Below, piece by piece: positions 1,505-41,200 of a stretch of DNA of 64,000 bases. Numbering within the stretch: position 1 is the first letter of the stretch; each line of letters opens with the position of its first letter. The notes under the pieces are model-generated. The model worked only from the letters and a program-made list of their open reading frames with translations, searched no databases and was not told the origin of the DNA. The stretch spans positions 124,001 through 188,000 of the forward strand of contig NIVC01000659.1 of NCBI GenBank assembly GCA_002269645.1, written 5' to 3'. Source of the stretch: Macrostomum lignano. Lineage: Eukaryota. A program made the position numbers and the translations under genes.

Positions 1505-2832
1505 CTACACAGCACAGTACGGAGTGACGCCAGTATCGCAGTGCAAGTGAACGCACACCACTGAAGCTGGCTGTGCTCCATCAATAGCCAGGCTGTACCG
1601 GCGGGTCACCCGGTACCGCAAGCTGTCCATACCGCTGGTTCTGTCTCGCCTGAAGGTCAATTCCCGCTGATTGCCAACAATGCGGCTGTCCCGGGCGTGC
1701 CTGCGCGGATCGTGCAGGTGGACGAAACTGGCCGTGCCGCTTGACAGATTGCGCAATCGACCAATAGATAGACCGGCCTCCATTAATCTAAGCCGGAACT
1801 CGTCGTCCTCGCGACCCCAGCCCCAGAATAGGTTGGAGAAGCCGCCAGACTTGGCGAATGCCTCACGCGTTAACAGCAGAATGCCGCCCATGTACTCTTT
1901 GTAGTGGTACTGCGGGTTGAGGGTTGACGGGTCGACGGTGTTCTTGAATGGGGCTTCAGTGCGATTGTTTCTTAGCAGTACATCACAACTCTTTTTTGAA
2001 GGGTTTTACATGTACAGGACAACTCTCTTTTGAAGGGTTGTACATGTACATCACAACTCGGTTTTGAAGGGTTGTACATGTACAGGACAACTCTCTTTTG
2101 AAGGGTTGTACATGTACAGGACAACTCATTTTTCAATGGTCGTTCATGTACAGGACAATCCTTTTTGAAGGGCTGTACATGTACAGGACAACTCGGTTTT
2201 GAAGGGTTGTGCCAGTATATGTACAGGACAACTCTTTTTTTAAAGGGCTGTACGCGTACAGGACAATTGGTTGAAGGGTTGTACATGTACAGGACAAGTC
2301 TTTGCGGGGATGTACTCGTACTGAGGGGATTATTTGTAGTAGGTATAATTAACCAATTAGCATCAGCACCACATTCGCAAGCACCAACCTGAGGATGCAG
2401 GTAAGGCGGTGTGACATGCAGCACATCATATCCGCCTTTGTCCGGCGGAAACGGATAGTCAATAGAGGAATGATTGGGCAACAGATCCACATCGTGCAGA
2501 GCCATATAGTCGCAGTCTGAGCAGCCGTGCTCAAGGAAGCCAACGTTGAGCAGTGCGCCGCGATTGAATCTAAACGAGTCGCACTGGTCCACCACGATCA
2601 CGTGATGCGGCCGGTGGCGATCGTTTAAAAATTTGCTCATATAAGGCAGGAAAGCTGACAGTTCGCTAAATCTGTCTCTGAATGGCACTATGATGAGTAG
2701 CCGGTGATCTATCATCTGCTTTGACGCCAACCTGTCTTGAACAGACTGGCGCAGTGCAATGCACAAAAGAAACAATAATACTACTATAAGCAGTAAATGG
2801 CACGATCTTTGTCCGTTTAATTTTAATTGCAT
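1505..2832 (-). CDS. B4GALT7: Xylosylprotein beta-1,4-galactosyltransferase (GT7 family). Exons 2832-2389 and 1909-1505, 282 aa
   Basis: N-terminal TM anchor, IVPFRDR, FRFNRGALLNVGF, LHDVDLLP (DxD), HPQ|YHYKEYMGGILLL across a GT..AG phase-0 intron (1910-2388), and GFSNLFWGWGREDDEF. Spliced length 849 nt is divisible by 3. Confidence 0.93.
1985..2310. repeat. ~33-bp intronic minisatellite in B4GALT7
   Basis: Repeated tttgaagggttgtacatgtacaggacaactc. Confidence 0.9.
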
Positions 2833-2940
2833 TGTCTGATTGTTTAGCGCCAAGCAACACCTGAAAATCGTATTGCAAATTCAATTCTAAGATTATTCTG
2901 TTAATAAAGCGAGGCACCCACTCCCACTTGTCTACTACTA

Positions 2941-10700: not shown

Positions 10701-11480
10701 ATGTCTTTTGATTCGAACCTGTTGCTGTGCTCCCACTTGCAGTACAAGCTTTGGCTATCACCATCCGAGAAAGGAAATCTGGTGTGAATGCATAAATTAC
10801 TGAAAGATGACACTGGCGAAGCGCTGGCAGCAGTTTGGAGCTGGAGCTGGATATTGACCCTCAAACAGTTAAACCAAGGGGCCTACGTGTGTGCAGCTTG
10901 CACTTTACGGACGAGGCCTACAACTCCCTTACAAAGCGCCACAAACAAGACATCCGTCTTCGCTGGGACGCAATCCCACGGCCAAGAACTGGTGCTGCCT
11001 CGGCGCGTTTGAATAGACCAGCTACCCCTGTGTGCAAAGGACTGATGGAGGCGGACGACATGTACCCTCCAGTGCTGGAGCCAATTAGCGATCTACTTGC
11101 AGCCGAGCCTGCGGCCTGCCTGCTGCCAGTGCTGTGGCAGAGCAACACCGTGTCGGCTACCAGATGCTGCGCCGAGAATAGCTGTTGCGGCTGCACTGAG
11201 AGCTCTCACCTCTGCAGCCGATTCCAAGCCAACGACAGAAAGACGATGATCAAGCGGCTGCAGCGGCGATCCCGAAAGCGACAGGCGATGATCAAGCGGC
11301 TGCAGCAGCAACTCTCAATGGTCAAGGCAAGTGTATACTCGTAACGCAGCGCAGTCATCCGTGGACTGTGAATGCGTGGCTGGCGCAGCTTCCAGCGGTC
11401 GACTGGGCGCTCGCAGTCGGGGGTGCTCTGGTCGAAGGATGTCATCAGCTGATCATTGCAGCTGCACCACAAGAGTCATC
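10701..11480 (+). pseudogene. Degenerate THAP-domain, P-element/THAP9-like transposase 5' fragment
   Basis: Across frameshifts: CCAPTCS, RKSGVN, AKRWQQF, RVCSLHFTDEAY..RLRWDAIP (THAP CSxHF and AVP-box), coiled-coil IKRLQ repeats, then GVLWSKDVIS*SLQL. Confidence 0.65.
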
Positions 11481-24464: not shown

Positions 24465-26572
24465 TTAACTGGAGCACGACCTGGTTGATTTGGATGCTCT
24501 GTCTTCCAGCAGCCTCACTCTGGCTTCCTCTGCCGCGGAAATTTCTGAACCAAAAAAGCTTCTAATTCTTTCAGCGCAGATCTTCAGGCGGGCACCGTCT
24601 GTGCAAAAATTGCAAAAAGCAAACAGCTCCTCATAGTCGGCATCCACATCAAGGTCGGCTTGCCAGCTGGCCATCTCTGACTCTCTATCAACGCTCTCTG
24701 CTCGCAAATGCAGGCTTAAACAGCGCCAGAAACTGTAAAAGTTGACGTAAGTGTGAGAAGCATTGCCCTGCTGGCCGAGGTGACAAATACAGCTGCTGGC
24801 GACTGTCTCTGGCAGAAAGTCCACCCCGATACTTCCATGGCTGTAAGCAAAGCAGAACTTCCAGGCCCAATCGCTTTCGCGAAGGATTATATAATCGTGC
24901 TCTTCAAAGTCGTAGCCTTCAAAATTGGCGTAATAACCGGATTCATTCAGTGTCTGAGCAGGGTCCCACTGTCGCTTTGTCTGATGACCCGCCAGCCGCT
25001 GTAGCGCCTGACAGGCGGACAACTGGTCGCCGAGTTTCAGATGCGCCAAGGCCTCCAGAACCTGGCGGGCGCACTTCATACAGGCCAAGTCATCGGCGCT
25101 TCTCAGCTTCTCATAGAAGTCGCTGGCCTGCTCAGGCTGCAGGTGTTGCAGTTCGCACAGTCGCCAGTAGACGAAGCCGTAGATGTCTGCAAAGTAGCTG
25201 AGCTTCAGTGTCTCCGGCCGAAACGATGGAACTCCCAACGGGAGCAGAGTGAATGGATAGAAGTAGAAGCTCGTGTCCTGTCCAAGCGGCCTCACGTGAC
25301 CAGCCAGGTGATGCTCAAATTCGGCCATGTTGAGCAGAACCCGCTTGATCAAAGTGAAAACAGTCAGTTTTGTTTCTGGCGATCCTACGATGGCGCTTTT
25401 GAAGAACAATGGCGCTCCTTCTAAGAAAAAGTGCGGCATGCAGACCTCGGGTTTGGGTTCATTGGTAGTGAGTTGCAGCATGAGCAGCAGGGACTCTCGA
25501 AACAGCGCGATTAGTCGTTCAGGCTTCCACTCATCCGGGTCATCCTGCTTCTTCTCGAGCATGAAAAACAGCAAAGTCTTGGCGTGGTAGGTCTTCAGAC
25601 CGGGCGCGTTCCAGGTTTTCGGGATGAGTCGCTTGAACAGGAACTTCAACAGGATAAACAGCTGGCCTTGCACAGTTGTCAGGCTGCGGAGGGCTTTCCT
25701 TTCCTGGAAGCTGAAGCTCACTCGAAGCTCGGTCGTTTTATCCGGCCTAGTTGCTCTGACCAGGTGCACGTTGCCCTCGCAATTGACGCTATCATCGCCT
25801 AGCAGAATGTTGATCCGGTGAGTATAGAATGAGCTGCAGCACATGTAGGCATAGCAGGTGTCCTGAGCTGGCCGGATTCCGCAGGGCGGAGCAGCGACTG
25901 CGGGCTGGGTGCCTGCAATGCAGCGGATGGCGTTTGATTAGCGGATTCAGTAACGATGCATGTGATGGATTTTATTTCTCCGACACTTCATATCTCCGAT
26001 ACTTCATATCTCCGACACTTCATATCTCCGACACTTCATATCTCCGACACGTCATATCTCCGACACTTCATATCTCCGACACGTCATATCTTCGTTAGGG
26101 TTAGGCTTACGGTTAAGCTTGTCGGAGGTATAAAGTTTCGAAAATATAAATAGGTGCTTTCGGAGATATGAAAGCGTCCCGTATAAAATAGACTGCAAAT
26201 ACCCCATTGATTCAGGTGACCCCCGGACTTCTACAAACCTGCTTGAACATCGATCAGACAGTGGCCTTCGACAACTTTTAATAGCAAGCCTCGTCCTCGT
26301 CTATCGGAGCACTGGCAGCCGAAGAACAGGTGAAACTTTTCCCCCTCCTGGATGACGGTCCAATCGATGTCGGAGTCCCTGGCGGTTCTTCCGGTCACCT
26401 GCACCAGGCTGTTGCCCCAGCCGTCGGAGAAGCTGCCAGTCATTTCCCGCATCTCTTCATAATAGGCCTTAACAGCGAGCTTTTGCAAGAACTCGGCCAT
26501 CTGGCACTGGAACTGAGCTCTCTCCCGGGTGAACCCAGCCTCCAGGAGTAGCTGGTGCAGGCGCAGGCTCAT
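24465..26572 (-). CDS. Mab-21/cGAS-like nucleotidyltransferase (cGLR). Exons 26572 (or 26597)-26239 and 25912-24465; at least 593 aa
   Basis: NTase motif GSFSDG...DSDIDW, SFSFQE, LFILLKFLFK, LKTYHAKTLLFFMLE, W, MPHFF (Mab-21 C-lobe). Phase-1 GT..AG intron 25913-26238 joins both ORFs in frame. Confidence 0.88.
25976..26090. repeat. 16-bp intronic minisatellite in the cGLR intron
   Basis: Repeated tctccgacacttcata, followed by ttagggttagg. Confidence 0.85.
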
Positions 26573-27198
26573 CTGGGCGTCATCGGCTGGTGACTCACTG
26601 AGAATTAGGAAGTAATAGTTGTGTCGTGACTATTTAAAGAAACAAATATATGCTCGCTAGTAGTCTATATACTCAGCAACATTGAAAAGTCGCTACTCTG
26701 TGCCAGTGAGCAATTTCTCTTGGACTATTCTGAAATAAAAGATACGAGAAAACTGATCGGGTTAGCTTCAATCCGTCCAACCCTCGCACACCGCTCCCAC
26801 CACTTCATTCCTCAACTCAAGTCTGCCGCGGCGTAGCTGAGTTGCGTTACTCGCAAAGATTGAGAGACTTTTTTCCTGAACTCTTAAAAGTGACGATCAC
26901 AGACAGAATCTTCTGGGATGGCGACTTTTCGATGTTGCGGAGTGATATTTTGAACTCCAGTCCAGCCTAATAGCTATATAAATATAACTCTTTACACATC
27001 GTTGAAATTTCCAAACAATGCTAGTTTCAGACTTCATTTAGGCCCTCCGAGGGGCCCAGTGTGCATACAGTGTATATTGAACACTTACAAAGCGTGGATA
27101 TCAGTAAGCATGGCCTTGAAGTCCGCAAAAGTGTGAGTATTGTCGACCGTATATTGGATTTTTCTGAAAATAATTGCAGGCCAAGTTAGAGTTTTAAT

Positions 27199-29239
27199 TT
27201 ATAAAACCCTTGTACGAGAAAAAGAGGGTGTAAGGCACAACCTTGACGAGTCTTCTTCCTGATCAGTCTGAGTTGAAAATCTCAGCAGCAGGTCGACAAT
27301 CACCTGATGCCCAGCGCTCCGAGCAATGTCCAGCGCCGATTGACTGGCACTTTTCTGTAGGTCTAGAACTGTCTCCTCGAGATCCGCGCCATTCTCCAGC
27401 AGGGCCTTCACGATGTCAGCGTAGCCTCTGCTGGCGGCACGCATCAGCAACGTCCAGCCGTCGGTTTCTACCGCTCGGCAGCTCAGGTCAACGAAATTCG
27501 CCACGAGCGACAGGCTCAGAGCGATGAAGCCGCCTGCTATGGCTGCATGGGCGATGCGCTGCGTCTGTTCTGGCGTCAAGTAGCTCAGTATTAACCGGAG
27601 CGAGCTGCACGCGTTGTTGGCCGCCTCGCCGTCCAGACAGCGTACCAGCCCGTCAGGACTTTGCTTGATTAGCTCTGCAATGTTGAGTCCATTTTCTAGC
27701 AGAACAGATACGACTAGCACAGAATTATTTCCAAGAGCGCAGGAGGATCCACTGAGAGTCCGTGATATTCAAATCGGCAGGACGGAATCCCAAACTAATC
27801 AAAAGTTGTACAACACGGGATTGTCCGTATCTGGCAGCGTCTATCAGACTGTGCCAGATGAGTTGTTTGCGGTCTGCTTCGGATTTAGAGTAAAAATCGA
27901 GCAGTTGCTTTGCAATACAGACATCTGTCAGATTAACGGCAGGGTTGGTGCCAAGCTGTTGATCATGAACTTCCTCCAACAGAACAGCGGCAACTTGAAA
28001 ATCGAGCGTTCTGAATGCGCTTTGAACGATCGCTGCTCGATCTGGAGGATCTAGATCATCTGGGCGGAAAATGCCTAAATTCAGCAACAGCCGAACAGCC
28101 CTCGGATCGCTGGATGTTGCCGCATGGCACAGTGCGCGTTCGATCAGTTGCTTTCGTTCGTCCACGGTCAGTGAGCAGTGATCAAATCGTTGGCAAATTT
28201 GATGAAAAATTTCTGTAGCGGTTGGATCTTTTGAAGAAGCCAGCTGGTACAGCACGTGACTTGTTGACTCGTCATTCAAAAAATAATCAACAACCGTAGG
28301 AAATTGCAGCAGTTCCCGCAACACAGAATAATTGCGCGCAGAAGTAGCTGCGTTGGCGCACTGATTCAGCAAGCAGCCGTTGCGCTCGTTACCGGAAATG
28401 TCTCTAATGGCCGACAGCAGTTTGTTAACAATAGGCCAAGATGAGCACTCGGCTGCCACGATGACTGCTTGCTTATTGGAACCAGTTTCTACCGGATCTG
28501 GATTTGCACCGGCAGTCAAAAGCAGGTCGATAATTTGTTCTGAGTCGGATTTAGCCGCTAATTGAATCGGTCTGCCATTCAATCTGGGAAGGCTCGGATC
28601 AGCTCCGTGTCCCAGAAGCAGCTCCACAGCTGCGGTCTGTCCTGAACCAGCAGCTGAGCACAAAGCGTTCGTGAGCGACTGGACGTCTAGAAAGCTCGGG
28701 TTAATGTCCGGATTGCAGACTAGCAAACGTACAATGTCCTCCTGTGTGGAAGCGCCGACTGTACGGTTGAGCGCGCAGTATCTTTCGTCTACTCGATTGT
28801 CCCCGGTGGCCCCCGAGCGAAACAGCAGTTCAACAATCTGTTTATGACCGAAGCTCGCGGCATAGTAGAGCGGTCGGCAGCCGAACCAGCGCTGCTCCGG
28901 CATGTCCGGATCTGCGCCAGCCTTTAGTAGCTCGGCTACTATGCTCAAATAGCCTCGGCGGGCCGCGAAGCTCAGTGGTGTAGCGTGGATGCGTGGATCC
29001 TCGTAGTTGGGATCGGCCGACCAGCGTACGAGAAGGTGCCGCACCAGATGCGCCTGGCCGCGAAAGCTGGCCTTTATCAGAGCCTTCTGAATGAGATCCG
29101 GCAGTCGAACGTTGGAGTCAATGCTGCCTGCTTGCAGCAGCAGCTGATCAATCCGTTCTATGCTACCAGCTGCGACTGCACGGTAGATTTCAGTTGCATC
29201 TGCTGTGGAAGCTATAGTTTGCGTTGTCAATATGTACAT
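27199..29239 (-). CDS. Multi-ankyrin-repeat protein (~670 aa) interrupted by one +1 frameshift near 27730-27745; may splice to the cGLR
   Basis: ANK units ATPLSFAARRGYLSIVAELLKAGADPD, RPLYYAASFGHKQIVELL, GWTLLMRAASRGYADIVKALLENGAD and SALDIARSAGHQVIVDLLL. ORF 29239-27725 continues in the +1 frame as CALGNNSVLVVSVLLENG. Confidence 0.85.
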
Positions 29240-29454: not shown

Positions 29455-30165
29455 CGGAGAGAGTGAGTGATGCGCAGAGAGTGAGTGATGAGCAGAGAGT
29501 GGGTGATGAGCAGAGAGTGAGTGATGCGCAGAGAGTGAGTGATGAGCAGAGAGTGAGTGATGAGCAGAGAGTGAGTGATGAGCAGAGAGTGAGTGATGAG
29601 CAGAGAGTGAGTGATGAGCAGAGAGTTAGTGATGAGCAGAGAGTGAGTGATGAGCAGAGAGTTAGTGATGAGCAGAGAGTGAGTGATGAGCAGAGAGTGA
29701 GTGATGAGCAGAGAGTGAGTGATGCAGAGAGTGAGTGATGAGCAGAGAGTGAGTGATGAGCAGAGAGTGAGTGATGAGCAGAGAGTGAGTGATGAGCAGA
29801 GAGTGAGTGATGCGCAGAGAGTGAGTGATGAGCAGAGAGTGAGTGATGAGCAGAGAGTGAGTGATGCAGAGAGTGAGTGATGAGCAGAGAGTGAGTGATG
29901 AGCAGAGAGTGAGTGATGAGCAGAGAGTGAGTGATGAGCAGAGAGTGAGTGATGAGCAGAGAGTGAGTGATGAGCAGAGAGTGAGTGATAAAGCAGAGAG
30001 TGAGTGATGCAGAGTGAGTGATGCAGAGAGTGAGTGATGAGCAGAGAGTGAGTGATGAGCAGAGAGTGAGTGATGAGCAGAGAGTGAGTGATGCAGAGGG
30101 AGTGATGCGGAGAGTGAGTGATAAGCAGTGAGTGAGTGATGCGGAGAGAGTGAGTGATGAGTGAC
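29455..30165. repeat. 18-bp minisatellite
   Basis: Repeated gagtgagtgatgagcaga. Confidence 0.95.
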
Positions 30166-30654
30166 AAGCTATCAGGAGTAATTTTATTTTTTTAATTCGC
30201 AATAACATGCTTAGAACGGAAGCATACAAAATTTTCAATTAAACAATGCACTCACCCATTTGCTGTGATACCTCAGTATGCGGCACTATTAATTAGCAGC
30301 TTTAACCAATATCAAATCAAAATAAGCTGAATTTTTAAGCGCTGTAGTTTATGACTGAACAAGAAGAATTAGAAAAAGAAGCAGCCTCATGCCTATCATA
30401 CAAAAAAATACAATTTCTTTCAACTAGGAACCATACAGTACTCTACAGTGTACAGATGAAATTTGATTGCAGCCAAAAAAGCGCGGGAAGGCCTTTTTGC
30501 TTCAATTTGAATTGTACAGCAATTCAAAGCTATTTTTAGAACGACCGATGAACGATATTAATTGTACAGCTTCCTTTTCCTCGTACATGGAAAGATGGAG
30601 AGAAAGTACTTGGCACAGTAAGAGACAAACAAAAAGAAATCCTTTAGGTAGCGG

Positions 30655-31275
30655 CTACTCACTAATGACCAGGTGATAATCAGGGAGTGGTTACTCACTA
30701 ATGACCAGGTGATAATCAGGGAGCGGTTACTCACTAATGACCAGGTGATAATCAGGGAGCGGTTATTCACTAATGACCAGGTGATAATTAGGGAACGGTT
30801 ACTTACTAATGACCAGGTGATAATTAGGGAGCGGTTACTTACTAATGACCAGGTGATAATCAGGGAGCGGTTACTCACTAATGACCAGGTGATAATTAGG
30901 GAGCGGTTACTTACTAATGACCAGGTGATAATCAGGGAGCGGTTACTTACTAATGACCAGGTGATAATCAGGGAGCGGTTATTCACTAATGACCAGGTGA
31001 TAATCAGGGAGCGGCTACTCACTAATGACCAGGTGATAATCAGGGAGCGGTTACTCACTAATGACCAGGTGATAATCAGGGAGCGGTTACTCACTAATGA
31101 CCAGGTGATAATCAGGGAGCGGTTACTCACTAATGACCAGGTGATAATTAGGTAGCGGTTACTCACTAATGACCAGGTGATAATCAGGGAGCGGTTACTC
31201 ACTAATGACCAGGTAATAATTAGGGAGCGGTTACTCACTAATGACCAGGTGATAATCAGGAAGCGGTTACTCATT
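30655..31275. repeat. 36-bp minisatellite
   Basis: Repeated ctcactaatgaccaggtgataatcagggagcggtta. Confidence 0.95.
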
Positions 31276-31719
31276 TAAGAAGTGAGGCGACAATTAAGGA
31301 GTCAAAATAAAATTGAAGCTATTATTTAATGAACTTTAAGACATCATTAAGTTGATAAATTTGACAAAAGACTAAAATATTTGCTAATTCATATCACACG
31401 AAGTTTCGAATGAATTGCATGATCTCTACCAGTACAGAAGACAATGGATTCTTTGCAAAACGCGTTTGTATTTTTGCTGTCTTTGGCTAAAGAGTTAACT
31501 CAAAATTAGCTACTTTTTACTAGGTTTTTATTAGGGAAGATAGCGAATAGCTCGTACAACTGATGACGTAATGATGTGCAAGATTCCCGACAAATTGTAA
31601 TGAAAGAAGTCAACATTCTAAATCGTTATGTAGAAAGATTCATAATTTACAAATTAGTGCTTTAAGTAGTCGCATTCTGTATTAATGTGGGACTTTGGGC
31701 ACTAGCTCGTAGAGTGAGT

Positions 31720-33030
31720 AATAGTGAGCAATGAAACCTTGTGAATGAGTGATCAATAACAACACAGCCTTGTGAATGAATGAATGGCAACAAGGCAATC
31801 TTGTGAATGAGTGAAAAGCAACAAGGCAATCCTGTGAATGAGTGAATAACAACAACGCAATCTTGTGAATGAGTGAAAAGCAACAAGGCAATCCTGTGAA
31901 TGAGTGAAAAGCAACAAGGCAATCCTGTGAATGAGTGAAAAGCAACAACGCAATCGTGTGAATGAGTGAATAGCAACAATGCAATCTTGTGAATGAGAGA
32001 ATAGCAACAACGCGATCTTGTGAATGAGAGAATAGCAAAAACGCAATCTTGTGAATGAGTGAATAGCAACAACGCAATATTGTGAATGAGTGAATGGCAA
32101 CAACGCAATATTGTGAATGAGTGAAAAGCAACAACGCAATCGTGTGAATGAGTGAATAGCAACAATGCAATCTTGTGAATGAGAGAATAGCAACAACGCA
32201 ATATTGTGAATGAGTGAATGGCAACAACGCAATATTGTGAATGAGTGAAAAGCAACAACGCAATCGTGTGAATGAGTGAATAGCAACAATGCAATCTTGT
32301 GAATGAGAGAATAGCAACAACGCGATCTTGTGAATGAGAGAATAGCAAAAACGCAATCTTGTGAATGAGTGAATAGCAACAACGCAATATTGTGAATGAG
32401 TGAATGGCAACAACGCAATATTGTGAATGAGTGAAAAGCAACAACGCAATCGTGTGAATGAGTGAATAGCAACAATGCAATCTTGTGAATGAGAGAATAG
32501 CAACAACGCAATCTTGTGAATGAGTGAATAGCAACAACGCAATCTTGTGAATAAGAGAATAGCAAAAACGCAATCTTTTGAATGAGTGAATAGCAACAAG
32601 GCAATCTTGTGAATGAGTGAATAGCAACAACGCAATCTTGTGAATGTTGAATAGCAACAACGCAATATTGTGAATGAGTGAATGGCAACAAGGCAATATT
32701 GTGAATGAGTGAATAGCAACAACGCAATCTTGTGAATGAGTGAATAGCAACAACGCAATATTGTGAATGAGTGAATGGCAACAATGCAATCTTGTGAATG
32801 AGAGAATAGCAAAAACGCAATCTTGTGAATGAGTGAATAGCAACAATACAATATTGTGAATGAGTGAATAGCAACAACGCAATATTGTGAATGAGTGAAT
32901 GGCAACAACGCAATATTGTGAATGAGTGAATGGCAACAACGCAATATTGTGAATGAGTGAATGGCAACAATGCAGTCTTTTGTCTTTTGAATGAGTTAAA
33001 AGAAAAATTCAGTTTTGTGAATGAGTGAAT
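31720..33030. repeat. ~31-bp minisatellite
   Basis: Repeated ttgtgaatgagtgaatagcaacaacgcaatc. Confidence 0.95.
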
Positions 33031-38200: not shown

Positions 38201-41200
38201 CTAGTATTAAAAATATCAAAAAAGCTAAAAGTCTTAAATATTGTTTATTTTATATTGGCTTTTGCTACTATTTGTATATATATTTTGCCTATTCATTATA
38301 ATAAATTATCAATACATAAAATATAGACCAAATCATATATGCATAACCTTGGGAATTATTAATAACATGTGTGCAAGCGCTTAATGCTACTAATAGTAAT
38401 AATAATAGTTTTTGTAAATAAATTTGTCAATAATAATTTCGAGTTTTATCACTCAAGAATAGTATTCACATATTATTTGTTTTAATCTTCTAACGTTTAA
38501 TAATAATATTCATGTAAAAATTGTATGTATTTTTAAACCGAAAACTAATTTTAGCCCTATTTGTTTTAATACTGCATATATCAAAATTAATATTGATCAA
38601 GTCTCAAAATAGTATAAATAGACGGGATCTGGCCAGAGAGCCACCAACTGGCTGATTGCTTGTTCCTAAATTAGTCTCAAGTCTCGCTACTTGTTGAGCC
38701 TTAAACTGTTACTTAGAAATCTTTTCAAGACTTAGTAAATTTTTCGATTCAAAGAGTGAAGTGGAAGTTAATCATATCACAGATACTACTGATACTCAGA
38801 ATACCAAGGAGATTGAAGTAAAACAAAGTAGATCTCGGGAATACATATACAGTATTGAGAAGGCCGTGACCCTCTAATCTCGGGAACGCCTAAACGACTG
38901 GACTAGACGATCAGACACTTAAATAACTACAAAAGAATTACAAGGAAGATCATTCTGAGAAATACATTCCAGGCCAATAGTAGACCACTCGGCATATACT
39001 AAGAACGCTACCAATACATATACTAAGAACGCTACCAATAGAAGTAGATACTTAGACTAATCCTTAGACATATACCTAGACTTATTCTTAGACTTATACT
39101 TAGACTGATACTTAAAGACTTATACTCAGACCTATTCTAAGAAACATTTCTCAGATTATTCTAATATTGATAAACTCATAATTTATTAATCGAATAATCT
39201 TGGTGGCAGCTACCAACCTAAGAAGAACACTTAAGAGATTAGTAAATTAGCCCTGTGACAGCTTTTGGTGACAGTGTGAAATTATTATTAGAGACAGAAG
39301 TAACCCCTAGGACACATGGTTCCTTGGGACTATTGGTTGAAGGCAGTCACGTGACTACTATTCTATCTAATATCGACTTACATGTGTGTGTTGCCAATAG
39401 AAATGGCCAAGTGAATCCCAAGGTTATGCCCAAGCATGGACCAAATATGAAAATATAACCAAATGTTATTTTTATAACAACTATAACTATTTTAGGATTT
39501 TATATAATAACTAAGGTTATAATAGCCCTTAAAAGCAACAAAGGAAATATCTTTACCTACTAGTATAGCAGCCTAGGTAGCATGGCCTTTTGTTAATGCT
39601 TGATAGCACCTATATAATATGGCCTTTAATCAGAAATCTTGGTATAATTTTTCTAAATCTATCTCTAGAATGTTTAGTTTATCAGAGGTGGCTTTTAGAG
39701 TTTCCCATAGTAAAATGAATATTTGGAATAAAATAATTAAGTTTAAAAAGGCCTTTAAAGTCTAAAATGACAAATAATCTACTGTTTTCTTTTCAGAATA
39801 CAAAATTTCTAGAATATGCAGCTAAGCATGTTACCATTACTACTAAAAGTACATCTGGAGATAGCAGCAAAGCTGAGAACATTAGCTTTGATTTGCATTG
39901 TATCAATCTAAATGAGGCTAACTGGCATAACAGTGTACCAAGGCAACACTATGATCTAATCACAAGCTTTCTAACTCTGCACTGGATTAAAAACTTGACT
40001 GCCTGTTTTGATAGTTTCAAGCAGCTTGCCACACCAAGGAAAACACTAATGTTTCATGTGATTGGTATCCAGCCAGGACGGAACTTTCAAGCCACTATTA
40101 AATCACTTGCTACCACAGATAAATGGGGTCACATTGTTCAGGTAAGTCTATTGAAATATATAGTGTTCATTTAGTTATTGCAGTGCATATTGCAGCTTTA
40201 GTTAGTCAATATTGGTAGAAGTTTGATATTGATATTGTAAGTTTATGCAAAACCTCTTTGATACATTTATAAAAAATATGTGATATTATTGGTTTTACTT
40301 TAAAATGAAGAGTATCTTTCATTTAAAGATTCATTTAAAGGTTCTCTAAACCCTATCTCTTGGATATAGAGGGGTATATATAAATCCAGAAAATTTTGAA
40401 TCAAGGGCACAAATTACTAAGGTATATAAAATAAAAAATTCTAACTCAATAGAAGCATGCACCCTATGTACCTCCCCCTTAAATCTGCCACAACTTGGAT
40501 ACTCATCCCAAAGTTAATATACCTTAGTTTTACTTTTAATTAATAACTTTAATTGGTTTCTCAAGCTTAAAACACTTGTGTGACTGATAAATAATGTTAT
40601 GTTGCCATATGCTATTTATTTACTCTTTCCTAAGTATCATATGATTGCAAGTAGAGATGCTAATACTGGGACCCCGGTTTCGAAAAATACTGGTTTTGGG
40701 CAATTTTTTGGTATTACCAATACCAGTATTAGGGTCTGGTATTGGTCTAAAATTATGTCTGTATTTTTACAAATTTACAATTTTTTGTTTAAATTGCATT
40801 TTTCTAGAAAGTAAAAATGCTTTTGCTTTGGCTTTTTAGCTTTAAATTTACTTGGGATTTGGGGATTTCTTAGAATTGGGGAAATGTTTAATTTATGCTA
40901 TAAGGAATAAGCCTGGGGATACTCTTGATGGCATAAGTGTCTGAGTGGCAAGACACTATCTAATATACCAAGGGGGAAAGAAGAAAAGGGCTATGCAGTA
41001 GATTGGAGTTGCCTGGGAAATGGATGCGCCAATGGGAAATTTCAATAGCTAATGGGGAATTCTAACAGTCAATAGGGAATGCTGGCATAGAAAGTGGGAT
41101 ATTTATAGGGAATGGGGAGGTAGGAAGGCAGAATGCCTAATGAATTGGCACTAAGGCCTAATAGCAATTGCTTAGTTACCCATTAGCTAAATATCACCAT

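Follow-up and report, generated by a model that had tools for sequence, protein, structure and literature searches.

In this study, we examined a 64,000-nucleotide stretch of the Macrostomum lignano genome (assembly GCA_002269645.1, contig NIVC01000659.1, positions 124,001 to 188,000 of the forward strand; hereafter the window, to whose first letter all positions refer) for a gene that would join an array of ankyrin (ANK) repeats to a cGAS-like receptor (cGLR), an enzyme of the Mab21 fold. We consider it quite likely that the minus strand from 29239 to 24465 is one three-exon gene, a member of a large, lineage-specific ANK–cGLR family. This three-exon structure is strongly supported by comparison with public models, with a second copy and with paralogous loci. 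The features of the candidate gene, all on the minus strand, are as follows, where a slash in a splice motif marks the exon border.

27242..29239 (-), exon 1, the single large ANK exon; 1998 nt, start codon ATG at 29239..29237; the public models P0001 and P0002, described below, map here
27725..27745 (-), site of the frameshift, with a premature stop; CTCCTGCGC followed directly by TCTTGG, without the GC that the second copy has after 27737; TAA at 27727..27725
26598..27241 (-), intron 1; 644 nt, phase 2, GT..AG; homologous phase-2 introns occur at five paralogue loci
26239..26597 (-), exon 2, linker and N-terminal part of the Mab21/cGLR nucleotidyltransferase (NTase) core; 359 nt, paralogue counterparts 347-365 nt
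26437..26432 (-), G46-S47 of the putative catalytic motif, exon 2
26371..26363 (-), D68/D70 of the putative catalytic motif, exon 2
25913..26238 (-), intron 2; 326 nt, phase 1, CAG/GTTTGT..TTGCAG/; obligatory, its position and phase conserved in all mapped paralogues (..AG/[STN]xPA..)
25862..25860 (-), D129, the putative third catalytic Asp, exon 3
24465..25912 (-), exon 3, remainder of the NTase core with the RVSFSF motif, Mab-21_C and a family-specific C-terminal domain; 1448 nt, the stop codon ending at 24465

The join between the ankyrin exon and the enzyme

Exon 1 amounts to about 666 codons after repair of the frameshift and codes for roughly 20 ankyrin repeats in an array; the Pfam family Ank_2 was recognised on both of its open reading frame (ORF) pieces, with E values of 2e-49 for the piece from ATG 29239 and 2e-18 for the piece at 27720..27199. 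A sequence-only reading of this DNA had proposed that the ankyrin ORF ends in EEDSS at a phase-2 donor at 27242/27241, that a phase-2 acceptor at 26598 opens in frame with the cGLR, and that the resulting splice gives 3804 nt once a single base is removed, and each of these elements was recovered on the minus strand. Exon 1 ends at 27242 with GTCAAG/GTTGTGCC (AAG/GTTGTG, phase 2), exon 2 starts at 26597 behind TTCCTAATTCTCAG/TGAGTC (TCTCAG/TGAGTC), and the open frame continues into ATG 26572. Read across the join from 27242 to 26597, the peptide is EEDSS-S-ESPADDAQMSLRL, and ATG 26572 accordingly reads as an internal Met and not as a start codon. The exon lengths sum to 1998 + 359 + 1448 = 3805 nt, and taking away one base leaves 3804 = 3 x 1268. 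Donors beginning with GTT, to which the same reading had appealed, were found both in the cGLR intron (CAG/GTTTGT) and in a B4GALT7-like gene of the window (CCTCAG/GTTGGT).

Intron 1 has a GC content of 41% vs 53% in the exons, and it contains the read-through stop of the ankyrin frame (27201..27199) together with an ATTAAA at 27198. The linker between the ANK array and the Mab21-fold nucleotidyltransferase is short and acidic. Within intron 2, a 16-nt tandem repeat, TCTCCGACACTTCATA, was observed at 25977..26091 (7 copies, 94% matches). Any donor and acceptor pair has a chance of 1/3 of being in frame and only 8 codons upstream of the ATG need stay open, so the in-frame arithmetic is weak evidence by itself; it is because of the comparative evidence from the public models, the second copy and the paralogue loci that the junction stands well above chance.

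Database models of the gene and of its second copy

It was observed that the UniProt model A0A1I8FV86 (P0001, 898 aa) maps onto the window at 100% identity with exon borders at 27242 and 26597 and at 26239 and 25912, and the first pair is the very splice that had been predicted to join the ANK array to the cGLR. The same junction is present in A0A1I8GDN2 (P0002, UniProt, 954 aa), which is 97-99% identical and belongs to a second locus that may be a homeolog. P0002 reads ...SESPADDVQKSLRL (...DDVQKSLRL), with Lys in place of the supposed start Met of the cGLR. Both public models end at ...FFKSA (25392) and lack the last 308 residues of the gene. In the protein search with the ANK part, the two fused models P0001 and P0002 were the only close matches and no ANK-only model was found; in neither database-wide protein search was there a separate model for the ANK part or the cGLR part of this gene by itself.

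P0001 also contains a 142-nt 'intron' at 27816..27675, which we rejected as a device of the gene predictor. Its donor scores -6.2 on a generic matrix of our own construction, built from approximate metazoan frequencies and not trained on M. lignano; it cuts intact repeats, and the second copy reads through.

Family members and their exon plan

The sequence-only reading had named a search for proteins of this genome with both ANK and Mab-21 domains as a check on the fusion, and the homologues found speak in its favour. The 593-aa Mab21 protein retrieved 57 homologues, all named ones except three from M. lignano, and ANK domains occur together with the Mab21 region in 44 of them. An exhaustive phmmer search gave 180 representatives of clusters at 50% identity, and all ten of the top representatives that were checked are from M. 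lignano. The ANK–cGLR genes of this species number in the dozens (55 clusters at 50% identity, E <= 1e-30). Most of the scanned representatives carry the ANK array N-terminal to the Mab21 part, and the product of 1268 aa is ordinary for the family because ANK–Mab21 relatives annotated at 1109-1378 aa exist.

Five paralogues (P0004, P0009, P0067, P0080 and P0077), which bear BOX15 locus tags of the Mlig_3_7 annotation, were mapped to their own loci in GCA_002269645.1; this annotation was built on a genome-guided transcriptome assembly (PMC8629364). One exon plan is common to all five loci, namely a large ANK exon, a phase-2 intron, a Mab21 exon of 347-365 nt, a phase-1 intron and a last exon of 1.4-1.7 kb, and in the window the exons measure 1998, 359 and 1448 nt, with introns of phase 2 and phase 1 between them. 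Paralogues, too, can have the ANK array in a single exon, of 1.5-1.7 kb. An additional short exon lies ahead of the Mab21 exon in three of the five, measuring 54 nt between phase-2 introns in P0004 and P0067, and P0080 and P0077 join the ANK exon directly to the Mab21 exon. The acceptor stands 13 codons before an L[HN] motif in P0077, the same as in the window, and 12 codons before it in P0080. Inside the Mab21 core, the phase-1 intron falls at ..G/[STN]xPA.. in five of five. Judged by this plan, the ANK array and the cGLR of the window locus would lie in one polypeptide, joined via the phase-2 intron that the family conserves.

Some further members of the family deserve description in their own right. 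P0073 (PAA59752.1; GCA_002269645.1, NIVC01002235.1, 1501-5151) has a cGLR–ANK–caspase architecture, with Mab21/cGLR at residues 2-538, ANK at 600-737 and a caspase domain, Peptidase_C14, at 872-1094; its five exons are separated by canonical GT-AG introns of 73-102 nt, the family phase-1 intron is kept, and PAA80948.1 (1444 aa) is a sister model. From this domain order, some family members appear to be wired directly to a caspase. In P0003 (UniProt, M. lignano, 1036 aa), one whole ANK–Mab21 unit precedes a second Mab21 unit, of which only the N-terminal part is present; either two tandem cGLR genes have been merged in this model or it represents a true multi-cGLR fusion. Relatives with 27-37% identity were also found on short environmental contigs, namely P0030 and P0047 (JGI metagenome contigs) and P0048 (labelled as a Kangiellaceae metagenome-assembled genome); these are probably eukaryotic (meiofaunal) DNA in metagenomes and not bacterial genes.

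Fold and active site of the enzyme part

The identification of the enzyme as a Mab-21-fold cGLR, already made in the sequence-only reading, is borne out by structure prediction, structural search, family profile and catalytic motif. An AlphaFold2 (AF2) model built on 28 family sequences reached a predicted local distance difference test (pLDDT) of 87.3 and a predicted template modelling score of 0.90. The top 46 Foldseek matches of this model in the PDB were all cGAS, MAB21L1, MB21D2, Sp-cGLR1 or Tc-cGLR (best E 1.1e-7, probability 1.00), the best being cGAS with a template modelling (TM) score of 0.58, normalised to the target. The family profile matched Sp-cGLR1 (8gjy) at E 9.5e-9 and then cGAS at 6e-8. 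Against cGAS, hhalign gave a probability of 84% and aligned ELRVSFSFQERK with the cGAS stretch TWRLSFSHIEKE.

With both hhalign and HMMER, the alignment to cGAS was confined to the second half of the core, and for this reason the N-terminal catalytic motif was assigned from conservation and predicted strands. G46, S47, D68 and D70 are invariant across the family and D129 is at least 90% conserved. In the AF2 model, GS follows strand 41-45, D68/D70 lie on strand 68-82 and D129 on strand 127-137, which is the pattern of polymerase-beta-type NTases; these residues were placed by motif and secondary structure, not by residue-level superposition. The enzyme part is thus a predicted cGAS/Mab21-fold protein with an intact catalytic motif (GS, DxD and third Asp).

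The C-terminal domain of about 250 aa (24465-25490 (-), residues about 341-593) is conserved and family-specific, and consists of helices and a small sheet with the motifs DWAWRFC and YVNF. No Pfam family matches it, and its separate AF2 model (pLDDT 79) found no fold match in the PDB, the matches (E >= 0.25) being only noise resembling tetratricopeptide repeats (TPR). The isoelectric points of the core (8.3), the ANK array (5.2) and the C-terminal domain (5.1) are not diagnostic of ligand type.

Relation to known receptors

With reference to the literature, the survey of Li et al. 2023 (PMC9980059) describes most cGLRs as stand-alone proteins and some as carrying TPR or ankyrin modules, and its domain table gives M. 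lignano PAA68676.1, PAA45980.1 and PAA86972.1 with Ank_2. The first of these, which is P0008 of our set, is 43% identical to the window enzyme. According to the same survey (PMC9980059), five M. lignano proteins, PAA68676.1 included, were cloned for a biochemical screen, the constructs of these proteins, among those examined, start in the Mab21 region, and many cGLRs were apparently inactive in vitro, probably for want of the right ligand.

The closest systems are the M. lignano ANK–cGLR paralogues, which likewise have an N-terminal ANK array, a linker, a Mab21 NTase and the family C-terminal domain, with the same exon plan and intron phases, and which share the GS...DSDID...RPAxD motifs with the window gene. 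Nevertheless, identity of the enzyme part between the window gene and the Mlig_3_7 (BOX15) paralogues is only 40-56%, and the window ANK array is longer (about 666 aa). Among solved structures, Stylophora pistillata Sp-cGLR1 (PDB 8gjy) is the best sequence match to the window family. Unlike the ANK-fused window protein it stands alone; it senses double-stranded RNA and makes 3'3'-cUA, and the 250-aa C-terminal domain of the window protein has no match in it (the profile match ends near position 315). Some cGLRs of S. pistillata are fused to ankyrin repeats like the window gene (PMC9980059), and death-domain fusions occur among the cGLRs of this coral as well.

Vertebrate cGAS and human MB21D2 and MAB21L1 display the same bilobed Mab21 NTase fold (Foldseek probability 1.00, target-normalised TM about 0.5-0.6) and share the RxSFS...E[KR] and Mab-21_C signatures with the window enzyme at an identity of about 13-16%. 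The window enzyme does not align with the zinc-ribbon stretch of cGAS in hhalign; where cGAS has a disordered basic N-terminus the window protein has an ANK solenoid, and it has an additional C-terminal domain. The sequence-only reading had drawn a comparison with NLR (nucleotide-binding leucine-rich repeat) receptors. NLRs and other STAND (signal transduction ATPases with numerous domains) receptors likewise couple a repeat array to a signalling enzyme or an effector, in gene families with a strong expansion in a single lineage. However, their leucine-rich repeats are C-terminal vs the N-terminal ANK repeats of the window protein, and they act by oligomerisation-driven recruitment vs a would-be nucleotide signal. 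No STAND ATPase (NACHT or NB-ARC) was detected by Pfam in the three ORF pieces, which gave only ANK families and Mab-21_C, so the analogy is purely architectural. Nothing usable on STING or another cognate receptor of M. lignano came out of the literature search, and no proteome search was made.

The frameshift in the ankyrin exon

The break that the sequence-only reading had reported in the ankyrin ORF is present. The frame from ATG 29239 halts at the TAA at 27727..27725, and the repeats go on out of that frame (ORF 27720..27199). Where an open frame needs CTG CGC GCT CTT GG, the window reads CTG CGC TCT TGG; within 27700..27780, an open frame would be marked by CTGCGCGCTCTT and a frameshifted one by CTGCGCTCTT. 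A0A1I8GDN2 is open through the part of its model that matches this region, reading DSQWILLRALGNNSVLVV (WILLRALGNNS) straight across the corresponding site. By this protein comparison the frameshift would most simply be a 2-bp loss (CGCGC to CGC, after 27737), simpler than the 1-bp gain implied by the one-base correction. The frameshift is the sole defect across 3.8 kb, all other frames being open and the catalytic residues intact. Because of it, the assembled sequence does not encode the full protein; an intact product would be 1268 aa. The window copy is, with about equal likelihood, either a very recently disabled gene or the victim of a sequence or assembly error.

Alternative explanations

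A number of observations weigh against the reading of 29239..24465 as one working ANK–cGLR gene. The donor AAG/GTTGTG at 27242 is weak, scoring -2.2 on the generic metazoan matrix not trained on M. lignano, and it lacks GT[G/A]AG, which is reported to be more enriched than any other motif at the cis-donors of M. lignano (PMC8629364). The frame over the whole coding sequence is interrupted in the window copy. No Mlig_3_7 (BOX15) or transcriptome-derived protein for this gene was found in the two database-wide protein searches and the exhaustive phmmer search. A0A1I8FV86 and A0A1I8GDN2 may be ab initio models, and the literature search did not reveal the annotation method behind them. On the enzyme ORF, PF20266 (Mab-21_C) was only marginal (25.7 bits vs a cut-off of 24.1), and the Pfam scan of the three ORF pieces did not report the Mab-21 NTase model PF03281. 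M. lignano is absent from the main text of Li et al. (PMC9980059), and none of its enzymes is described there. Finally, a fused gene may have a different join, through an extra in-frame cassette exon inside 27241..26598, as in P0004 and P0067, or through a donor at 27304. We hold such a join to be improbable. Two of the five paralogues do have a 54-nt mini-exon between two phase-2 introns, and the donor CATCAG/GTGATT at 27304 is the best-scoring one (4.8, generic matrix) and could pair with phase-0 acceptors at 26629, 26593 and 26572; yet P0080 and P0077 join directly, and so do the public models of both this gene and the second copy. The donor at 27304 was rejected: its use would remove the final ANK helix (VIVDLLL), a helix conserved in the paralogues (VLRLLD), and it conflicts with both public models and with the paralogues.

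There is also little chance, in our estimation, that the locus holds two separate genes, possibly in an operon, with an ANK-only protein polyadenylated at the stop at 27199 and a cGLR translated from ATG 26572 of its own mRNA, 26598 being a spliced-leader (SL) trans-splice acceptor or lying downstream of the cGLR's own promoter. The ATTAAA at 27198 lies directly at the read-through stop, the gap of ~600 nt is under 1 kb, as expected for an operon, SL trans-splicing is frequent in M. lignano (PMC8629364), the ATG comes 25 nt past the acceptor, and the weak cis donor counts on this side too. However, the acceptor TCTCAG is off the trans-splice motif [T/C]TNCAG, and the SL ends in ATG (PMC8629364), so that splicing at 26597 would yield ATG-TGA. 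The second copy replaces the 'start' Met by Lys, and the next Met (M25) would cost the core its first helix; the cis donor is in the correct phase, the intron position and phase are kept in five paralogues with annotated ANK-to-Mab21 ORFs, and the protein searches returned only fused models. A two-gene arrangement may exist as a minor isoform beside the fused form.

The fused three-exon gene therefore remains the preferred structure, and a more serious doubt concerns the state of this copy. We put it a little short of an even chance that the structure is right and the copy dead, the frameshift being real, so that the locus would yield no more than a truncated ANK protein of 504 aa or a target of nonsense-mediated decay, and only the second copy would be functional. 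The premature TAA suggests as much, and P0001 stays open only by means of the 142-nt pseudo-intron, from which it follows that the frameshift was already in the sequence behind that model. The lack of a BOX15 model among the matches of the two protein searches points the same way. Both real introns have non-consensus GTT donors, and in three of the five mapped paralogues the two homologous junctions carry GTGAGT. This is a large family with redundant members, and the genome is described as a hidden polyploid (PMC10468722). Against a dead copy stand the solitary nature of the defect and the identity of 97-99% to an open second copy. Long-read assemblies may, moreover, contain small indel errors.

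Further features of the window

Beyond the ANK–cGLR gene, a B4GALT7-like gene was found at 1505-2853 (-), with Glyco_transf_7N followed by Glyco_transf_7C across a 479-nt phase-0 intron (exon end 2389 at CCTCAG/GTTGGT, exon start 1909 at CCGCAG/TACCAC) that holds repeats of about 55 nt. Three long satellite arrays lie at 29458-30161 (18-mer x40), 30646-31273 (36-mer x17) and 31738-32979 (31-mer x40), the ANK start codon lying only some 220 nt downstream of the first, and because of them several long spurious ORFs appear in the 29458-32979 region. Weak Pfam matches were noticed to a THAP domain at 10835-11344 (+) (E 8e-4, below the cut-off) and to Methyltransf_23 at 39767-40174 (+) (27 bits, at the cut-off). 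The window may contain other genes or transposon remnants.

Possible function and significance

By analogy with other cGLRs, the enzyme would be inactive until ligand is bound, and the ligand-bound form would make a nucleotide second messenger at the GS / D68-x-D70 / D129 site; the ANK solenoid may supply recognition of the ligand or of a protein, or may hold the enzyme off. The product of the gene would thus be a ligand-gated nucleotidyltransferase with a recognising or autoinhibitory N-terminal ANK solenoid. We know of no ligand, product, ANK-array role or experiment for any ANK-fused cGLR. The ANK–cGLR architecture and this gene model are already known, being public through the database and the 2023 survey; what we add to the public record is proof of the junction by comparison, together with the 308 C-terminal residues absent from the models and the frameshift. 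For annotation, 29239..24465 can be treated as one gene, whose public model gains these residues and whose frameshift is flagged.

The single locus by itself adds little. To our knowledge, the phylum of M. lignano is said mostly to lack immune cGLRs. One rather speculative reading, which we think unlikely though worth stating, is that the ANK–cGLRs of this worm form a lineage-specific receptor repertoire in which the variable ANK solenoids, and not the NTase surface, would detect proteins of pathogens, or other ligands that are not nucleic acids, and relieve the cGLR of its autoinhibition. If true, this would be a functional convergence with NLR repertoires. M. lignano is amenable to transgenesis and its ANK–cGLR family is very large, and this flatworm would suit a study of whether cGLRs can sense anything besides nucleic acids.

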